Assembly (NCBI GenBank): GCA_020891255.1
Contig: BQFW01000008.1
Location: 930,001 to 994,000, forward strand
Reading direction: 5' to 3'
From: Entomortierella parvispora E1425
Taxonomy: Eukaryota > Fungi > Mortierellomycota
Length of the DNA stretch: 64,000 bases
In this document: positions 11,539 to 21,772 of the stretch, piece after piece
How positions within the stretch are numbered: the stretch's first letter is position 1
Layout: every line of letters begins with the position of its first letter
Notes under the pieces: generated by a model
Seen by the model: the letters and a program-made list of their open reading frames with translations, nothing else
Database searches by the model: none
Told to the model about the DNA's origin: nothing
Position numbers and translations under genes: made by a program

Positions 11539-13592
11539 ATGGACAAAATCCCAGAGCACCGCTCCCAGAACTTCAAGGCCAAGAGCGCCTTCAAGCCTGA
11601 GGAACTCAGACGTAACCGTAACGAGCTTAATGTTGAGCTCCGTAAGCAGAAGCGCGAGGAGAACCTTTCCAAGCGCCGCAACCTCGCCATCGCCGCCGAG
11701 TCGGATGAGTCTGAGGATGAGGGCATCGCCGCTGCGTACCATCAGGTATAGATACCTTGTATTTCACTTTATTCCCAAAGCTGTGTGGCCACACTGAGCT
11801 AGGTCTGGTGGATAATCCACAACACACCGCACCACAACATCGATACCAATAGTTGGATCGTGTGTGGACAGGAAGACGCAGCTTCATGAGAGGATGCCTC
11901 CACTTGATTCAAAATACTGACCCAATGAACTTGCTTTATTGTGCTTTCATTAGTTCCATGAGCAACTCCCTGCGATGATCCAGGGTGTCATGTCCGAGGA
12001 TGTGAACGAGCAGCTTGCGGCCACCGTTAGTTTCCGTAAGCTTCTCTCCAAGGAGCGCAACCCTCCTATTGACGAAGTCATTCGTTGTGGAGTCGTCCCT
12101 CGCTTTGTTGAATTCTTGTCAAACCCTCTTGTCCAGGTACAGCCAGTTGGCACTCTGGCATTCTGTTGATGTCAATGGATAAAGTAGAGTGTATCTAATT
12201 TTTTTTTATATTTGTTTTATCATGCAGTTTGAGGCTGCCTGGGCCTTGACCAACATTGCATCAGGAACCTCGGCTCAGACTCAATATGTCATTGAGGCTG
12301 GTGCCGTCCCTCTTTTCATCGAGTTGATGAGCAGCCCTGTTGCTGAAGTCAAGGAGCAGGTAAGGAGGATGACCTCTTGAGAACATACGGAAATGACCAC
12401 AGTTTCTGACCAAACGAACCATTCTTGATTTTGTAGGCTGTTTGGGCTCTTGGAAACATTGCTGGTGACAGTCCGCGCTGCCGTGACATTGTTCTCCGCG
12501 AAAACGCATTGATGCCCTTGTTGGCCCTCCTTCATGAGAACAACAAGATCACCATGCTTAGAAACGCCACCTGGACCCTGTCAAACTTCTGCCGTGGAAA
12601 GAACCCCCCACCAGACTGGGACTATGTAAGAATCCAATTTGATTGAACTGGTGTCTTCTCTTTTGCTACAGGCCTTTTGACATGCATTTGTACATGTTTG
12701 TTAGATTTCACCTGCCCTCGGTGTCCTTGCCAAGCTCATCTACTCGAGCGACGACGAGATTTTGATTGATGCCTGCTGGGCCATGTCGTATCTGTCTGAT
12801 GGAGTCAACGAGAAGATTCAGGCCGTCATTGAGTCTGGTGTGTGCCGTCGTCTTGTTGAGCTTTTGATGCACAACATGGCATCTGTTCAGACCCCTGCCC
12901 TCCGCTCCGTCGGCAACATTGTTACTGGTGATGACGTTCAGACCCAGGTCATCATCAACTGCGGCGCTCTTCAAGCTTTGTTGGCTCTTCTCTCCAGCCC
13001 CAAGGACAACATCCGCAAGGAGGCATGCTGGACCATCTCCAACATCACTGCAGGAACATGTGTCCAGATCCAGGCTGTCATTGAGGCCAACATTATCCCC
13101 CCTCTGATCAACACTCTTCAGAACGCTGACTTTAAGACTAAGAAGGAGGCTTGCTGGGCTATCTCTAACGCCACTTCAGGAGGATTGAACAAGCCAGAGC
13201 AGATCAAGTACCTCGTCTCTCAGGGCTGCATCAAGCCCCTCTGCGACATTTTGATTTGCATGGACAACAAGATCATCCAGGTTGCTTTGGATGGACTGGA
13301 GAACATCTTGAAGGTCGGAGATCTGGAGAAGGACCAGACCGACGGCGTCAACCAGTTCAGCATCTACATTGAGGAGTGTGGCGGTATGGAAAAGATTCAC
13401 AACTTGCAGGCCCACGACAATGTTGAAATCTACAAGAAGGCATATACCATCATCGACAAGTACTTCTCGGATGAGGATGACGAGGAGAACGAGCTTGCTC
13501 CTGGAGTCGACCAGAGCACTGGAGCATATGCCTTCAACCCTGCAGGCGCACCCCAGGGCGGATTCCACTTTGATCCCAACGCCATGCAATAA
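11539..13592 (+). CDS. SRP1: Importin alpha (karyopherin alpha), multi-exon
   Basis: IBB domain ([28 protein letters not shown]). ARM repeats [72 protein letters not shown]. Confidence 0.97.
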
Positions 13593-14140
13593 GCTACCTT
13601 TCCCCGTTCAACAAGGACAGGGCCATCTTCATTTTCTTTCTTATTCCCACCCTTTATTTCGTTTTGTTCGTTGATCACCCTTTTCTTTTCTGGCCCTCCT
13701 CCTACTTTTTCAAGTATTCCTTTATTCCCGTTCTCTTTTTTTGTGTCTCTTTCCCCTATTGTTTTATATTGAGGATTTTCCCCTCACCTGTTTCCATATG
13801 TTTTTTCTTAGCTCCTTTGCCACGCGTTCGCAGCGTTCTTATTTTTACCGAACTTCCTACTTTAACACCTTCTTTTTGCATCTCTCATTGCCTCTACCCG
13901 TCCGTTGAGTTCTGGCAGACGGGAAAGGATCTTGACTCTCCCTTCTTCCCCTTCTTCCCCTTGTTTAAACGCACACGCTCCCCAATAAAAAAAAAAAAGC
14001 TGTTTGCGTGACCTTTTGACCTTTGCGTATTTTCTCGTGCTCACATTGCATCAGCATTTCGCATCTCTCTCGCCTTCTCTTTTTTTTTTTTCCATTTATA
14101 TTTTTGACCCATTTCACCCATCTTTCGATATCCTTGAGTT

Positions 14141-14814
14141 ATGGTAATGACGCGTGCGCTTGAAAGACTCTTTTTATTCTCTGACGAGGTTCACCTTGTG
14201 TTGTTTTAACAATCTCTTTTGACTCTGTCAGTCTGAAGTAGAAGAAACCATCCGTCGACTGTCAGCCAAGAAGAATGTACAGGGCGTTGTCATTGTCAAT
14301 CAACTGGGACTCATGATCAGGTCAACATTGGATGCGTCGCTTGCAAAGCAGTATGCGACTCTCATGTCGGACCTTGTTCGGATGGCACGGGATTCCGTCA
14401 CGCAACTTGATGCAGAGGTAATGCATGCTTGGACCCTTGACCTTTTACTAAAGAGAGGCACCCAGTCTAGCGAGGGATAGAGCGAGTGAGCGAGAAACAG
14501 ATAGACGTCGTGCCAACTCTGACAACACTATTGCACTATTGCACAAACCCTGTCCTGCTGGACGACACCCATAGAACGAGCTCAAGTTTCTCAGGATAAG
14601 GACCAAGAAGCACGAAATCATGATTTGCCCAGGTAAAAGAGCAGATAACAGAGGATTGAACAAACGGACATGCGATAAAAGAACGCCCGACTGATCATTT
14701 CCATGCTTCCCATCCATGTCTCCCTTTGTTGCGTCTTCACCACACAAACACAAACCCACACCGTCCACAGAACGCGAGTACCTGATGATCGTGGTGCAAA
14801 CGCCCGAGGCGTAG
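14141..14814 (+). CDS. DYNLRB1: Dynein light chain roadblock/LC7; 4 exons (14141-14143, 14232-14417, about 14574-14631, 14771-14814)
   Basis: Spliced translation M|SEVEETIRRLSAKKNVQGVVIVNQLGLMIRSTLDASLAKQYATLMSDLVRMARDSVTQLDAE|NELKFLRIRTKKHEIMICP|EREYLMIVVQTPEA* closely matches the roadblock family. Absent from the ORF track. Confidence 0.92.
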
Positions 14815-15204
14815 CGTGACTGCGTCACCGTAAAAATGCACGTGTGTTGAATGTAATGAAAGAAAATGAAAAAAATGAGACCTTTCAGACTTCACAGCGG
14901 ACCGTCCTTGCTTCCTTGTTCATTGTCCTTTTTGGCACATTGCCCTCTTGCTTTATTCTCCTCTCCTTTCTTGCCCCATCTCCTTCATCTGCCGCTTTCC
15001 TTTCCTTCTCGCCCATTGCATCATCGCGAACAGACAGACAGGCAGACAATCAGAGCTTCATTGAAGGAAGCAAAAAGAAGAAGAAGAAAAAAAACGTAAT
15101 TGGTCACATCGGCATCAGCAGACCCATCCACCGCGTTCTTGACCCATTCATCATCGCCTGTACCTTCCTAACCGTCCCACCACATTCCAGACAGAGCATA
15201 CAAG

Positions 15205-15234
15205 GAAGAAGAAGAAGAAGAAGAAGAAGAAGAA
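15205..15234 (+). repeat. (GAA)10 microsatellite upstream of the kinase ATG
   Basis: Direct reading of the sequence. Confidence 0.9.
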
Positions 15235-15363
15235 CCAACACCGCTCCCACCATTCGTGAGTTCTCCCATTACATCATCCACCTGCGAGCCCTTTACACCC
15301 CTCCAAACAAACCTGCATTGCATTGCCACCAAACAGAAAGAAATCAGTGAGCATCGGTACATC

Positions 15364-18300
15364 ATGGACACGCCCATGCAGCACAGCACTCCATCCAATT
15401 CGTCGGACTTGGATGCAACCGTTGAACCTTCGTTGGAATCATCGTTGACGCCATCAACCATCCTGCAGCAAGAGCTAAACCACCCGCAAGAGCAACAGCA
15501 ACATCTCCAGCCTGAACTGGAACAACAGGAGTCTGTTGCTCGACTCGCTGCTGAGCCGCAGGAGCAGATCGTGATGGATCATCAACAGTTGCTGCAGGAG
15601 AATGAACATCAGCAACAATACACTATAGAGCAAGCACAGAGCATTGTTCAGCCTGCTCCGGCGTCGACGCAGATCCAAACTGATGTACCGATGACCCCGC
15701 TCGAGCATTCCCTCGCACCTGTGTCGATGCCTGAGCTGCAACAAGAGCTGCCACCATCGCCAATGATACAGCAACAGCAACACCTTGCAACTCAGCCCGG
15801 ATATCCACCTGCACCTATGGGCATACCCTCATCTCCCAATCTACCATCTTCCCCTTTCATATCTAGAAAACCAGGAGTCAACGGTCTGATCGAGAGAATG
15901 GCGTCAGCAGGCCAGATGAAGCGTACAAATACGAACTCGAGCATCGCCTCGTCCATCTCTCAGCTGGGGAGCATAAACTTTTCGGACGATGCTTTCTCAA
16001 ACAATCCCGAGGATTATGACGTTCGTAATCCCATTGGTAAGCCGCGTTGATCTTGTGCGACCAAAGATTGGTGTCCAGCTCCTGAATGCTTATTCGTTTT
16101 CGATTTTCGATTTTTTTTTTTGTTGACGTGTAGGATATGGATCCTCGGCTGTTGTCTACGATGCCTACTACAAGCCCTTGAACAAGAGGGTGGCGATCAA
16201 AGTTATTGATCTTGATATGTTTGAGCGTAACCAGATTGACGAGCTTAGACGGGAGACCCAGGTGATGGCACTGTGCAAACATCCCAATGTTTTGCGTGTC
16301 AATGGTGCATTCGTGACAGAAAGCAAGCTATACATTGTCACGCCCTACCTTTCTGCAGGTAAGAAATATGTCTTTGGACGATGTCTCCGATCACATAGAT
16401 ATGATGCTAAAAAGTTATCGTGCTCGGAAACTTTAGGATCTTGTTTGGACATCATGAAGACAGCCTATCCTGATGGATTTGACGAAGTCTCGATCGCAAC
16501 CATTTTGAAGCAAGCCTTACAGGGACTTGATTATCTTCACAAGAACGGACACATTCACAGGCATGTTTTCGAATATGTGTAGTGTTCTTGAACTTTTGTT
16601 TTATTTTCGATCGAGCTTGCGGATCACTAATCGGTCTGCGATTCGTCACCATCTTACAGGGATGTCAAAGCTGGCAACCTTCTCATGGATGACGATGGTT
16701 CTGTCTTGTTGGCCGACTTTGGAGTATCATCTTCTTTGATGGAGAACGGAGACAGACGAGGCATGAGAAAGACATTTGTCGGCACGCCCTGCTGGATGGC
16801 TCCCGAGGTCATGGAGCAGGCTGGGTATGATTACAAGGCTGACATTTGGAGCTTTGGAATCACAGCGATCGAGCTGGCCACGGGCCATGCTCCTTTTGCA
16901 AAGTATCCTCCCATTAAGGTATTAGATGGTGCCCTTATTGTTCTTATTTTTGGTATGATGGAAGATGACTCGGATCTGACTTTTTTTGCCGTTCATGTGT
17001 ATTTTAGGTCCTCATGTTGACGCTCTCTAATGATCCACCGACCTTGGACCGTGAATCTACCAAACATCGTTACTCAAAGTTGCTCAAAGAAATGATTGAC
17101 AGCTGTCTCCAAAAGGATCCTGCGAGAAGGTCAGTACAAATGATCGGCAACCGATCCACTTTACCGTTCTCGTTGCTAACGTTCTTGGATGTTTCGGATA
17201 GACCCTCTGCCGAGAAGCTGTTGAATCATTCATTCTTCAAGCAAGCCAAGAAGAGATCGTATCTTGTGTCTACTTTGTTACATAACCTCCCGCCCTTGGA
17301 ACAACGACCCCAGAAGAGTAAGATCCTTTTATTCATACTGGAGCCTGTCTGTCTCCTGAGCTGTGGCTCACTCTTTTTTTTTTTTTTTTTTTTTTTTTTT
17401 GGAATGATAGAGGCAGCGCAAAAGCTGGTGATGCCAGAAAAGGGCGTCTCTTGGGACTTTGATGCCGTTGACACTCCAGAGGAACCGGTGCGTCGACCCC
17501 GTACCGTGACGTTTGAAACACCCTCGCGCGCTTTGGCTGTAAACACCACAGCGGAGCCTGCAGAGACAATTGAGTCGGCGCCTTCTAGCTCCATGACAGC
17601 CACACCCACCAGTGAGACACAGGGGACCGTTCAATACGCACAGGAGGAGACCCCCAATTCGCAAAACAGCACGCCAATTTCCAGTCAGGCTAGCGATAAG
17701 CCTGTGAAAAAGTCTCGATTCGTGATTGAAGACTCGAACGCGGCTCTTTCTTCGCCCACAACACAGTCAATGGTAGAGCCATTTCCAGCCCCGATTGAGA
17801 CAGGTTCTCTACTTTTGCAGGCTGGACCCTCGACTGCTCAACTGGAACAGGGCTTTCAAGGATTGGGCGTCTCACAAACTGGATCCGAACAAGGAGCCCT
17901 CCCAGAGGTTAGGAAAGGACGCTTCAGTGTTAAGGATACGGCTGGAGGACTTTCGTCTCCTGTTCCCTCCAGTATCAAGACCATGCCAAATGAGTCGCTT
18001 CTCTCTCCTTCTCGCAGCTTGTCATCATCCCCGGTAGAAGGATCTGAAGGAGTTCGTATTGCTGGAGATCAACCTCCTCCATCAGGTAACATTTGACAAC
18101 ATGGACGATATTCAGTTCGATGGACAATGGACAATGGACAATGGACAGTGGACAGTGGACAATGGACGTTTGTTTGTGCATGAATGGGTGAGATTTCCTC
18201 TCGGAGGAATACTTTTCTACACAAGAAGATAATAAATGTCTGTCTTCTTGTTTGTTAGAGCGCAAATCCCGATTTGAGGTACACCATAACCATGCCTCAC

Positions 18301-19203
18301 CCACATCTGGATCTACAAGTGGTACAGGAACAAGCTCTCCAGCAGTCAACGGGGCGCAGGGTATGCCCCTTTCGAGAGAATCATCGCAGTCGCGGGTTGC
18401 GGGGGAATCTGGATTGTCTCGCGATAACTCTTCGACCCGAGTTTCGCGCTTCAGTATCGAATCGACAGCGTCCCCAACAGAGGGCTCTGTCGCCACAAGC
18501 AGCGTGCCCACTTCGTCCACAGGGACTCCCAATCCATCCAATGGGCCATCCGGCACCCAGAGCAAGCGGAGTCGATTCCAAATATCAAGTGTAGAGGGTG
18601 GTAGGACCGCCGATTATCCTCCAGGTAACGAACGGGTCAAATAACCTCGCTGGAAATGGTTATTTTACGGCCATTGTTGTCTAACGTTCAAACATGCTAT
18701 ATTTTATACGTCTTTTTTTTTTCTCTTTACTGACAACAGGGGATGCATCAGGATCTGTCCACTCTACGCCTAATACCTCCCCAACGGGTTCGCTCCTCCG
18801 TGGACAGCCAGGCTTGATGGAGGCTTTGGGAACGCATGCAATTTCATCGCATTTGGAGACGTTGTATCGACAAAATGAGTATCAACGACAAATATTAACG
18901 GAACTTTCAGCTGGCCTTGGGATAAAGAATGGGCCATTGAACAAACTGCATGGAGATTTTGGTGCATTCTTTGCTCCAGCAACTGGTGGTCAGCAGGCGG
19001 CGTACAGTGGTGGCAACAGCGTTGTCCTCAACAGCGGCGGTAGTATGAGCGGTGGTCTCGGTGGTGTCAGTGGAACAAGCGGGTCTGTCCCTGGCGGCAT
19101 TGAGAGACAGCTGCAGGTGGCGGTAAGAGAGAACGAGAGTCTGAGACGAGAGAACGAGGCCTTGAAGCGGGAACTTGACCGACTTCGCCGAGGCGCGCCG
19201 TGA
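15364..19203 (+). CDS. OXSR1: STE20-family (GCK-VI) SPAK/OSR1-like Ser/Thr kinase with Q-rich N-terminus, RFx[V/I]-repeat tail and C-terminal coiled coil
   Basis: IG|[30 protein letters not shown]|[63 protein letters not shown] are characteristic of OSR1/SPAK/Fray kinases. Many introns, including one GC-AG. Confidence 0.88.
18121..18167 (+). repeat. Heptamer tandem repeat (TGGACAR), about 6.7 copies, inside a kinase intron
   Basis: TGGACAA x3, TGGACAG x2, TGGACAA, TGGAC read directly. Confidence 0.9.
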
Positions 19204-19671
19204 AAGACCGACAGGCCACCACCACCAGACGATCAAAAGTGAAAACGACGAGAAGAGGAAGATGTGAGGATGTGAGCAGGAATAGGAAGAACGAGGAAGA
19301 GAGAAAGAAAGAAAGAAACGACGAAGGGGATCGCGAGAAGAGAGATAGATCCCGCCCCGCAATAGACCACCTATTTAAAAAGAAAAAAAAGGTCATTAAT
19401 TGCTGACATTGAGAATGAACATTGGACGATCATCCGATACTCTGTCCCTGTGCACAAAATGAAAATTGGCCCTTCTCTTCTCCTCTTTCATTCCCTTTAT
19501 TGCATCCCATCGATCGCTTGTTCAGCTCATTCACTCTCCTCCTCCTTCATCCCGACCTCTCTGTTTCTCTTTCCTCCCTTTGTCCTCTCCTGTCTGTCCC
19601 TCTCTCTTTCCTCTTTCTCTCCTCAATCAGATTTTGCTCCTTTGCCAGCCCCTCATTCAGTCATCTCTACA

Positions 19672-21772
19672 ATGTCGCAACCTACAGAGCTCTCAGTCCT
19701 CACTCTCAACTGCTGGTAAACCATCGTCCAACGTTGGTTCCTGAAATGCACCTCCTTCTCTTCTCTTTTCATCTCATTCCCACCGAGCATGACCACTGAT
19801 CCCATTCCTTGTCCTTTTCACTCTCTCTACTCTGTGCCTCCTTGGGTGCTATTAGGGGTCTCAAGTTCATTTCCAAAGACCGTGAGGACCGCCTGGGAGC
19901 TATCGGCCGCTATATTGCCGACAGATCTCGAGGATACGACATTGTAGGCCTCCAGGAGGTCTGGGTCTATGATGATTACCTTCGGATCAAGGACCTTGTC
20001 CAGGATACTCTGCCTTACTCCAAGCATTGGTACAGTGGCGTCCTTGGATCAGGACTGGTCATTCTTTCAAAGTTCCCAATCGTGAGCACCATGATGCGTC
20101 GTTTCGCCTTAAATGGAGACCCCTTCAAGTTTTATCACGGCGATTGGTATGTGGGCAAGTGCTGTGTCAGCGCCACGGTCGTGCACCCGACTTGCGGAGA
20201 GATTGAGGTCTTCAACACCCATGTAAGCATCTGTTTTTCCAACAGAAAATCGCAATTGAAACCTGACCTGGGCGTCGTCACCGGTTCGCTCCCCCTGAGG
20301 AAGCCACGGACTTGCATTCTGTACTGACCGCTCGTTCTCTTTTGCGGGCGTTTTCTTTTTCCGCTCTTTTTGATATCTGCAACAGCTCCATGCTGGATAT
20401 GACCCCGTTGGCACACCAGACTCGTACCTTGGATGTCGTATTGGCGAGGCGTGGGAGATGGCCTCGCTCATCAAGGCCGCCACTTCTCAGGGTCGCCATG
20501 TTCTTTCGGTAAGCTTATTTCTTGCCTTTCTCCCCTTTTTTTCAACAGGAGGTCCCAACGCAGCGCACGTTGTGAGGGGGCAGAGAATAGGGCGTTTTGG
20601 CGGGAGCACAAACCGTGGGCAGGCGGTCTCTCACAGGTTGAGATGGTTGACCTTCTGGGTGGACCAGTCGGTAAAAACATGACCAATTCATGTGGATCCA
20701 GCTTTCCTTGGGATGGCGATATGCGTCCACTTTGCAACTAATGTTTGCTGCCTTCAGGCATGGCGATGCCCTATACCATCTCTATTTGTGTTTGCGTTTT
20801 TCTAACCGGGATTTTTATTACTTTTTTGTTTACAAGCTCGGAGACTACAACAGTGCTCCCAACAGTTTGGTTGTAGCTCTGTTGACGAAGCAGGGAGGCA
20901 TGACGGATTCTTGGGCTAGATTGCACCCAGAACCAAACCCCATTCCCAGAGGACTTACACCCGAGGAAGGAGTGGCAATTATGGGCGTTACCTGCGATAC
21001 CCCTCTTAACAGCTGGTCAAAGCACAGCTGGCTCAACTACTTGACAAATGATCCCGTGGGCGAGCGTTTGGACTATATCTTTTACAGGGAGACACCAGAA
21101 ATGGTCTGCACATCTGTCGAGGTCGCAGTGCGGGAGCAAATCTCTGGCATTGGAGCACCCAACTCTGGGGCCAAGAACTACAGTGACCATTTTGGAGTTC
21201 ATGCCAAGTTTGCAATCTTGCCAGCTGTGTATCATTTCCAGAACCGGACGCCCAGCTTGGCCTTGTCCAACTCGTCATCCATGGGCTCTACCTCTTCACC
21301 AGCAACGACGTCGTCTGGAACGATTGCATCAAACCTGGAGCGTACCTTGAAGGATAGTCTGTTGGAGCAGGACCGAGGACTGAGCGTGGATACTTTGGAA
21401 CAGATCTTGATGATTTTGAAGCAGCACATGGAGCAGTCGCTTCGTCGTCCACGGTTGGAACTGAAGGTGATCTTCCCCTTGATGCTGCTCTCGGCTTTGA
21501 TCTTGGATGTGGCGTTCTTTTGGATTCAGCCTCGATGGGCGGCGTTTATTGTGGCGTTGCTCGTGAGCGCCTTGTCTGCAGGATGGATCGTCCACTTCTT
21601 GTACGGATTCTTGTTTGGAGGCGAGTTGTCCGGAGCGTTCTTGAACGTGATTCAAGAAGTCGAGTCGGTGATTGATTACAAGGTCGCCCATGAAGGTGCT
21701 GGATCGCGAGCCAACAGCACCCGTGGGGTCCCTGGTATCCACGGCGGACGTACGGGTCTTCTTCAGAAATGA
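19672..21772 (+). CDS. ISC1: Neutral sphingomyelinase / inositol phosphosphingolipid phospholipase C
   Basis: LSVLTLNCW|GLKFISKDR, YDIVGLQEVWVYDDY, GSGLVILSKFPI, FYHGDWYVGK, EVFNTH|LHAGY, LGDYNS, GVTCDTPLNSW, ERLDYIFY, YSDHFGVHA, plus two C-terminal hydrophobic helices. Confidence 0.92.

Follow-up and report, generated by a model that had tools for sequence, protein, structure and literature searches.

The stretch of DNA analyzed here (64,000 nucleotides of Entomortierella parvispora E1425, Mortierellomycota; assembly GCA_020891255.1, contig BQFW01000008.1, positions 930,001 to 994,000 of the forward strand; hereafter the window) contains a gene for a FRAY-family (OSR1/SPAK-like) STE20 kinase, whose long disordered tail carries five RFx[V/I] motifs and a leucine zipper in place of the CCT domain of its animal relatives. 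Sequence conservation and predicted structures suggest, as the best explanation, that the docking arrangement is reversed with respect to animals: the five motifs of a probably dimeric FRAY tail would serve as docking sites for the CCT-like domain of the WNK kinase encoded in the same assembly, and this WNK would then phosphorylate the activation-loop threonine (Thr). A probability of roughly 0.6 was assigned to this reading. The interval 17440-19203, for which a sequence-only reading had proposed such a reversal, is the 3′ half of the nine-exon FRAY kinase gene. A homology search identified the annotated product, P0165, as [quoted passage not shown] (959 aa); this protein was used as the full-length reference, and the exons were searched singly and not as a joined spliced protein.

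Kinase Domain and Adjacent Motifs

One protein kinase domain was detected in P0165 by Pfam. In comparisons with solved structures, exon 4 scored 130.8 bits against OSR1 and 127.6 bits against SPAK, versus about 90 bits for the next kinases, STK25 and MST3, and SPAK/OSR1 were the top-ranked matches of exon 2. These scores bear out the earlier assignment to SPAK/OSR1-like kinases, and by sequence comparison the catalytic domain is that of a FRAY-family STE20 kinase. The domain and the motifs next to it are the following:

16012-17241, + strand: protein kinase domain, P0165 residues 170-432, with five introns within it (Pfam Pkinase, E=6.8e-61)
16769-16789, + strand: activation-loop KTFVGTP, the first Thr being the counterpart of the WNK-phosphorylated Thr of OSR1/SPAK
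17449-17460, + strand: SWDF, with W473-D474-F475 just past the kinase domain, at the position of the OSR1/STRAD WEW/WEF motif
17497-17514, + strand: PRTVTF, a putative PP1-docking match to RVxF ([RK]-x-[VI]-x-F), based on pattern and conservation

The activation-loop Thr and the Mo25-type SWDF motif, both named in the sequence-only reading, were present and well conserved. Among 61 relatives, R329, G334, T335 and P336 of the loop were invariant and T331, F332 and V333 were conserved in at least 90%; W473 was invariant in the same set, and D474 and F475 were conserved in at least 90%. In an alignment of 80 fungal tails the W and the F of SWDF were both invariant. A P-[RK]-x-[VI]-x-F motif (PRTVTF) was also observed, lying 15 residues beyond WDF. 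Its positions were kept in most of the 80 tails (R/K in 77, V/I in 77 and F in 77), a conservation that suggests a built-in phosphatase docking site.

Five RFx[V/I] Motifs in the Tail

Five RFx[V/I] motifs were located in exons 7 and 8, at the places given by the sequence-only reading. Each copy was preceded by basic residues on its N-terminal side, and the linkers between the copies were rich in S/T/P/G. The spacing between successive motifs was 68, 59, 59 and 42 residues. The copies are listed with their positions and the form that each one takes in the family:

17707-17727, + strand: motif 1, KKSRFVI (nt 17716; read in an 11-residue context), family form KKSRFV[IV][ED]D
17911-17931, + strand: motif 2, RKGRFSV (nt 17920; 10-residue context), family form [KR]KGRFSV
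18261-18281, + strand: motif 3, RKSRFEV (nt 18270; 10-residue context), family form RKSRFEVxH
18438-18458, + strand: motif 4, RVSRFSI (nt 18447; 10-residue context), family form RxSRFS[VI]E
18564-18584, + strand: motif 5, KRSRFQI (nt 18573; 10-residue context), family form K[RK][SG]RF[QE][VI]S

The number of copies was far above expectation. When the three tail exons were shuffled with their composition preserved, the mean count of RFx[VI] was 0.057, compared with the five present, and none of 20000 shuffles reached four. Across 191 fungal tails, 639 RFx[VI] were observed versus 11 expected. The conservation of the motifs in orthologues, the lack of which had been named among the findings that would count against the proposal, was confirmed across fungal phyla: each of the five copies kept its own identity throughout Chytridiomycota, Blastocladiomycota, Neocallimastigomycota, Glomeromycota, Mucoromycota and Mortierellomycota. 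In motif 2, for example, G181, R182 and F183 of the tail alignment were conserved in at least 90% of the 80 tails. The column conservation was 0.76 in the motifs and 0.33 in the rest of the disordered region. In a linker that drifts, the motifs stand out as islands under purifying selection, a pattern that marks functional short linear motifs.

The flanks were analyzed in the 637 motif instances for which they were complete, giving the consensus [KR][KR][SG]RFx[VI]. K or R was found in 96% of the instances at position -3 and in 80% at position -2, and S or G in 98% at position -1; Pro was absent from position -3 to position +3. Two basic residues followed by Ser were observed in 67% of the copies, and the position before the Arg was occupied by Gly in 31% of all copies and, in motif 2, in almost every case. 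In peptide arrays of the OSR1/SPAK CCT domain, the core is R-F-x-V/I, Gly is the preferred residue before the Arg, followed by Ser/Thr/His/Asn, and Pro is disfavoured or excluded (PMC12413468). A further upstream Arg helps CCT binding in the context of the WNK1 peptide, but not in that of WNK4 (PMC12413468). The fungal consensus, as read from these alignments, fits all of the measured preferences of the OSR1/SPAK CCT.

A Disordered Tail With a Leucine Zipper and Without a CCT Domain

The tail of P0165 comprises about 500 residues, of which about 330, predicted to be disordered, carry the five motifs. It was modelled with AlphaFold2 (P0165 448-959, with an alignment of 80 sequences), and 367 of the 512 residues had a predicted local distance difference test score (pLDDT) below 50, including the surroundings of all five motifs. 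Two confident helices were the only structured elements of the model, and no beta-sheet domain was obtained:

18817-18915, + strand: conserved helix, P0165 832-864 (tail-model residues 385-417; AlphaFold2 pLDDT 87-94), which includes a 19-residue conserved segment
19090-19194, + strand: C-terminal leucine zipper, P0165 923-957 (tail-model residues 476-510; AlphaFold2 helix with pLDDT 87-96)

The consensus of the first helix in the 80 tails was HLExLxRQNExQRxxLxEL. [quoted passage not shown] In the zipper, three successive "d" positions had Leu in 75, 71 and 66 of the 80 tails, two "a" positions had Asn in 55 and 74 of them, and Pfam gave weak coiled-coil matches only. Leu at "d" together with Asn at "a" favours a parallel dimer, and the terminal zipper probably forms one.

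No match to the Pfam OSR1_C domain (PF12202) was detected at E<=1 in any exon, nor in 61 diverse members of the family. Together with the AlphaFold2 tail model of disorder and two helices, this agrees with the earlier observation that no CCT was visible, and a cryptic CCT domain in the tail was ruled out by both Pfam and AlphaFold2. Since CCT is absent from the tail, substrate docking through such a domain is impossible for P0165. A search of the ESM Atlas with the tail returned meaningless matches only (TM score of 0.15 or less).

The tail had also been described as TSC22D-like. As an analogy this description holds, because the layout is the same, but the homology does not: Pfam TSC22 (PF01166) was not detected in exon 9 at E<=1, and only three of the 61 relatives matched it, all with E>=0.11. 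A homology of the zipper end to TSC22 was consequently rejected.

The Fungal WNK and Its CCT-Like Domain

The fungal WNK was located by scanning metagenome contigs with a degenerate DNA pattern for HRDLKCDNIF. The scan yielded one Mortierellaceae contig (L016) that encodes a WNK with 91% identity to annotated proteins. From this contig a WNK encoded in the same assembly as the FRAY kinase was reached, P0419, which is annotated as [quoted passage not shown] and has 1022 aa. It shows the hallmarks of this family, GEGAYKHVY with the Lys in the glycine loop, VEVAWNQL without the beta-3 Lys, and HRDLKCDNIF. The WNKs of Mortierellaceae (P0395-P0462) seem to fall into two groups of paralogues, one about 1000-1060 aa long and the other about 1080-1250 aa, and a CCT-like domain is present in both; among the WNKs listed, one was from E. 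parvispora.

Residues 487-530 of P0419 matched OSR1_C with 20.9 bits, the Pfam cut-off being 22.4. The orthologues from M. antarctica, M. alpina, Linnemannia and E. beljakovae scored 22.2-25.6 bits, mostly above the cut-off, and the WNKs of chytrids reached up to 34.8 bits. The region 450-560 of P0419 was predicted to fold with a pLDDT of 83.7 into three strands and two helices. Its best matches in Foldseek were human domains, namely the CCT1 of WNK3, the CCT-like 1 of WNK2 with an RFXV peptide, and the autoinhibitory domain of WNK1; the CCTL2 of WNK1 and the CCTs of both SPAK and OSR1 were also among them, and all of the matches listed had a probability of 0.99-1.00. In addition, a profile built from 80 fungal WNK CCT-like domains matched WNK3 (3.5e-10) and the OSR1 CCT (5e-6). 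The sequence-only reading had called for a CCT-bearing protein in this genome, and P0419 with its CCT-like domain provides one.

Within the fungal WNK domain, F42 and E57 were invariant and F44, D49 and T50 nearly so; these residues align to the F-E-F...D-T...E of OSR1, and the acidic positions 49 and 57 of the domain are residues 498 and 506 of P0419. We take it that in the structure of the OSR1 CCT with its peptide (2V3S) the F-E-F strand pairs with the peptide and acidic residues hold the Arg of the latter. By contrast with the FRAY tails, the fungal WNKs (112 proteins of more than 600 aa) held only two RFx[VI], versus 11 expected, and no extended motif was present.

Proposed Docking Arrangement and Alternatives

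In animals, WNK carries both the peptide and a CCT reader, and OSR1/SPAK carries the reader. In the fungi analyzed here the peptide is on the FRAY kinase and the CCT-like reader on WNK. According to the proposed mechanism, the five motifs would be docking sites for the CCT-like domain of the fungal WNK, which would be recruited through them and would then phosphorylate the activation-loop Thr of FRAY; dimerisation through the zipper would give a kinase that presents ten motifs. We infer the physical interaction, the direction of the phosphorylation, the dimerisation and any physiological role. A role in condensates is speculation.

Several points weigh against this arrangement. The docking of WNK on FRAY is a prediction from sequence and modelled structure, and the OSR1_C score of P0419 falls just under the cut-off, so that the fold and profile evidence carries the claim of a CCT-like domain. 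The solved complex of the human WNK2 CCT-like 1 domain engages R-x-F-x-V and not R-F-x-V, and the classes of CCT domains differ in their motif preference; the specificity of the fungal domain therefore cannot be assumed. Furthermore, an NRBP-like protein or a canonical OSR1 could carry a CCT, so that the motifs may be read by another protein instead of WNK, or in addition to it.

This last point leads to an alternative in which the motifs are real docking sites but their reader is not WNK; it could be a pseudokinase of the NRBP type, some other protein with a CCT-like domain, or a domain of an unrelated kind. Motif conservation is silent on the identity of the reader, and CCT-like domains are present on several animal proteins, with further examples such as FERRY3 continuing to emerge. 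However, the CCT-like domains met in the fungal hits were all on WNKs, the co-occurrence of WNK with FRAY is ancient, and the activation-loop sequence that animal WNK phosphorylates is identical here, so that a reader other than WNK appears unlikely.

The clusters of basic residues, Ser, Arg and Phe could also be sites for basophilic kinases or basic patches resembling nuclear import signals, and not CCT ligands. The Ser preceded by two basic residues in 67% of the copies and the richness of the tail in Ser/Thr would agree with this. Nevertheless, the Gly that takes the place of this Ser in 31% of the copies, and in nearly every copy of motif 2, is not phosphorylatable, and the invariant residues R, F and V/I are the core bound by CCT domains. 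This explanation is accordingly improbable; a phosphate on the Ser could still tune docking without taking its place.

More improbable still is a role inside a single molecule or dimer, in which the motifs would fold back onto the kinase domain and act there as autoinhibitors or pseudosubstrates. The tethering of the tail to the kinase, its probable dimerisation and the higher local concentration that many copies could give would favour such a role, but five separately conserved copies, about 40-70 residues apart, exceed the need of one autoinhibitory element, and no packing of the motifs was seen in the AlphaFold2 tail model, which was built without the kinase domain. To our knowledge, no surface of OSR1/SPAK besides the CCT binds RFxV. 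Finally, a functionless chance product of low-complexity repeats or of a recent internal duplication, although the fairly regular spacing could reflect an old internal duplication, is already refuted by the shuffles, the excess across the family and the conservation data, in which the individual motifs stay recognizable from phylum to phylum although the linkers between them have diverged freely.

With WNK docking on the FRAY tail as the preferred reading, a broader proposal is doubtful: that peptide on FRAY and reader on WNK is the ancestral mode, later inverted or duplicated by animals, and that the dimeric ten-motif tail acts as a built-in TSC22D, clustering WNK into assemblies that form upon a stimulus and sense osmotic stress or crowding.

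Comparison With Known Systems

The kinase domain finds its best match in animal OSR1 (OXSR1), SPAK (STK39), Drosophila Fray and C. elegans GCK-3. A 14-residue activation-loop sequence is identical to that of animal OSR1/SPAK, and a Trp-acidic-aromatic motif follows the kinase domain in both cases. Unlike the animal kinases, the fungal protein has no C-terminal CCT (PF2) and instead ends in the disordered tail with the five RFx[V/I], the RVxF-type motif and the zipper. This tail resembles the C-termini of animal WNK1-4, where a long disordered region with several RFx[V/I] and a coiled coil is also found on a kinase of the same pathway; in the fungi, however, it sits on the downstream-type FRAY kinase, and the WNKs keep the CCT-like domain without RFx[V/I].

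The long isoforms of TSC22D1/2/4, which are WNK/NRBP adaptors in animals, likewise combine a long stretch of disorder, on which CCT-binding motifs lie, with a leucine zipper for dimerisation at the C-terminus. Nevertheless, no homology to them was detectable, TSC22D has no kinase domain, and TSC22D has been reported as restricted to Metazoa.

In the literature on fungal RFxV/CCT, FRAY/WNK kinomes, Arabidopsis RFXV, fray2 and Mucoromycota, no description of this FRAY-tail architecture was found, nor of RFxV on a fungal FRAY kinase or of a ligand for the CCT-like domains of fungal WNKs.

Distribution of the Architecture in Fungi

A collection of 1.84 billion representative proteins was searched with the stop-free open reading frame 17014-18096. 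In many of the relatives, two to five RFx[VI] followed the kinase, and the C-terminus was of the type ENExLRRENExLKRE. The named members belonged to Mortierellomycota, Mucoromycota, Glomeromycota, Basidiobolus, Chytridiomycota, Blastocladiomycota and Neocallimastigomycota. By sequence, the architecture is typical of early-diverging fungi, and most early-branching fungi appear to share it.

On the other hand, neither RFx[VI] nor the zipper was found in the FRAY relatives of basidiomycetes (Tulasnella, Flammula, Microbotryomycetes, Sporobolomyces and Pseudohyphozyma). No WNK of Dikarya was present among WNK matches that extended to plants, these matches being a hit list and not a census. In a kinome survey, FRAY "usually co-occurs with Wnk" (PMC3218828), and three WNK sequences have been stated for Phycomyces (PMC10301571). 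The loss of both features in Basidiomycota agrees with a co-loss with WNK. The loss of WNK in Dikarya is drawn from hit lists and general knowledge rather than from a census, and this also weighs against the docking of WNK on FRAY as proposed above.

Gene Model

The gene lies on the + strand at BQFW01000008.1 945364-949203, and its nine exons were predicted from splice sites read from the sequence:

15364-19203, + strand: whole gene of the FRAY (OSR1/SPAK-like) kinase P0165, nine exons
15364-16036, 16134-16358 and 16437-16560, + strand: exons 1-3
16660-16918, 17008-17129 and 17202-17317, + strand: exons 4-6
17411-18085, 18259-18624 and 18740-19203, + strand: exons 7-9

The stop codon is 19201-19203. 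Predicted exons 2-9 were 100% identical to P0165 and contiguous on it, and exon 1 differed from it solely by the removal of 144 bases (15723-15866), with the frame kept in either form. These in-frame bases, removed in the P0165 model, encode 48 residues (SMPELQ...FISR) and also read as a continuous exon 1.

All of the introns read as GT-AG except 16561-16659, which is GC-AG. This intron, with the donor AG|GCATGT, falls in the region of the HRD motif of the kinase, and the annotated protein requires its splicing. Two further sequence features were observed at the locus: a poly-T stretch of some 30 nucleotides in intron 6 (window 17366-17400) and a (GAA)n microsatellite immediately 5′ of the start codon (window 15205-15235).

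Paralogue and Neighboring Genes

A FRAY paralogue, P0187 (811 aa), with the five orthologous motifs, was found on the same contig in inverted orientation (BQFW01000008.1 1128855-1132153), 134,855 bases past the end of the window. Its neighbors are those of the main locus, an importin-alpha gene upstream and an Exo_endo_phos gene downstream. Given the same neighbors in inverted orientation, the FRAY locus is part of a segmental duplication. The inverted copy, about 180 kb away (L121, BQFW01000008.1 1125855-1135153), repeats the importin-alpha/FRAY/Exo_endo_phos block of window 11539-21772. Two FRAY paralogues on one contig were also observed in other Mortierellaceae (Linnemannia elongata and Mortierella hygrophila). 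The downstream neighbor in the window is:

19672-21772 (approximate), + strand: Exo_endo_phos gene (PF03372), next to the FRAY kinase gene

In several Mortierellaceae assemblies the Exo_endo_phos gene has been fused to the kinase by annotation, with models of 1167-1485 aa as a result; the name "phospholipase C type enzyme" has been given to one of these. They have the look of fused gene models, and conservation of the gene order is evident from them.

Significance

The WNK-OSR1/SPAK signalling pathway is defined by the docking of CCT on RFxV and has been studied almost solely in animals. The database name "OSR1/STK39" hides a different architecture in these fungi, and the tail of the FRAY kinase is a concrete, testable candidate ligand for the ancient CCT-like domain of non-animal WNKs. 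An entire fungal clade seems to bear the peptide on FRAY, the downstream kinase, and its reader on WNK; these kinases thereby offer a natural experiment on the evolution of docking polarity. The clade includes the genetically tractable Mucorales as well as groups of agricultural and medical relevance, without the heavy redundancy of paralogues found in mammals, and these fungi could thus be an entry point to osmotic and ion signalling.

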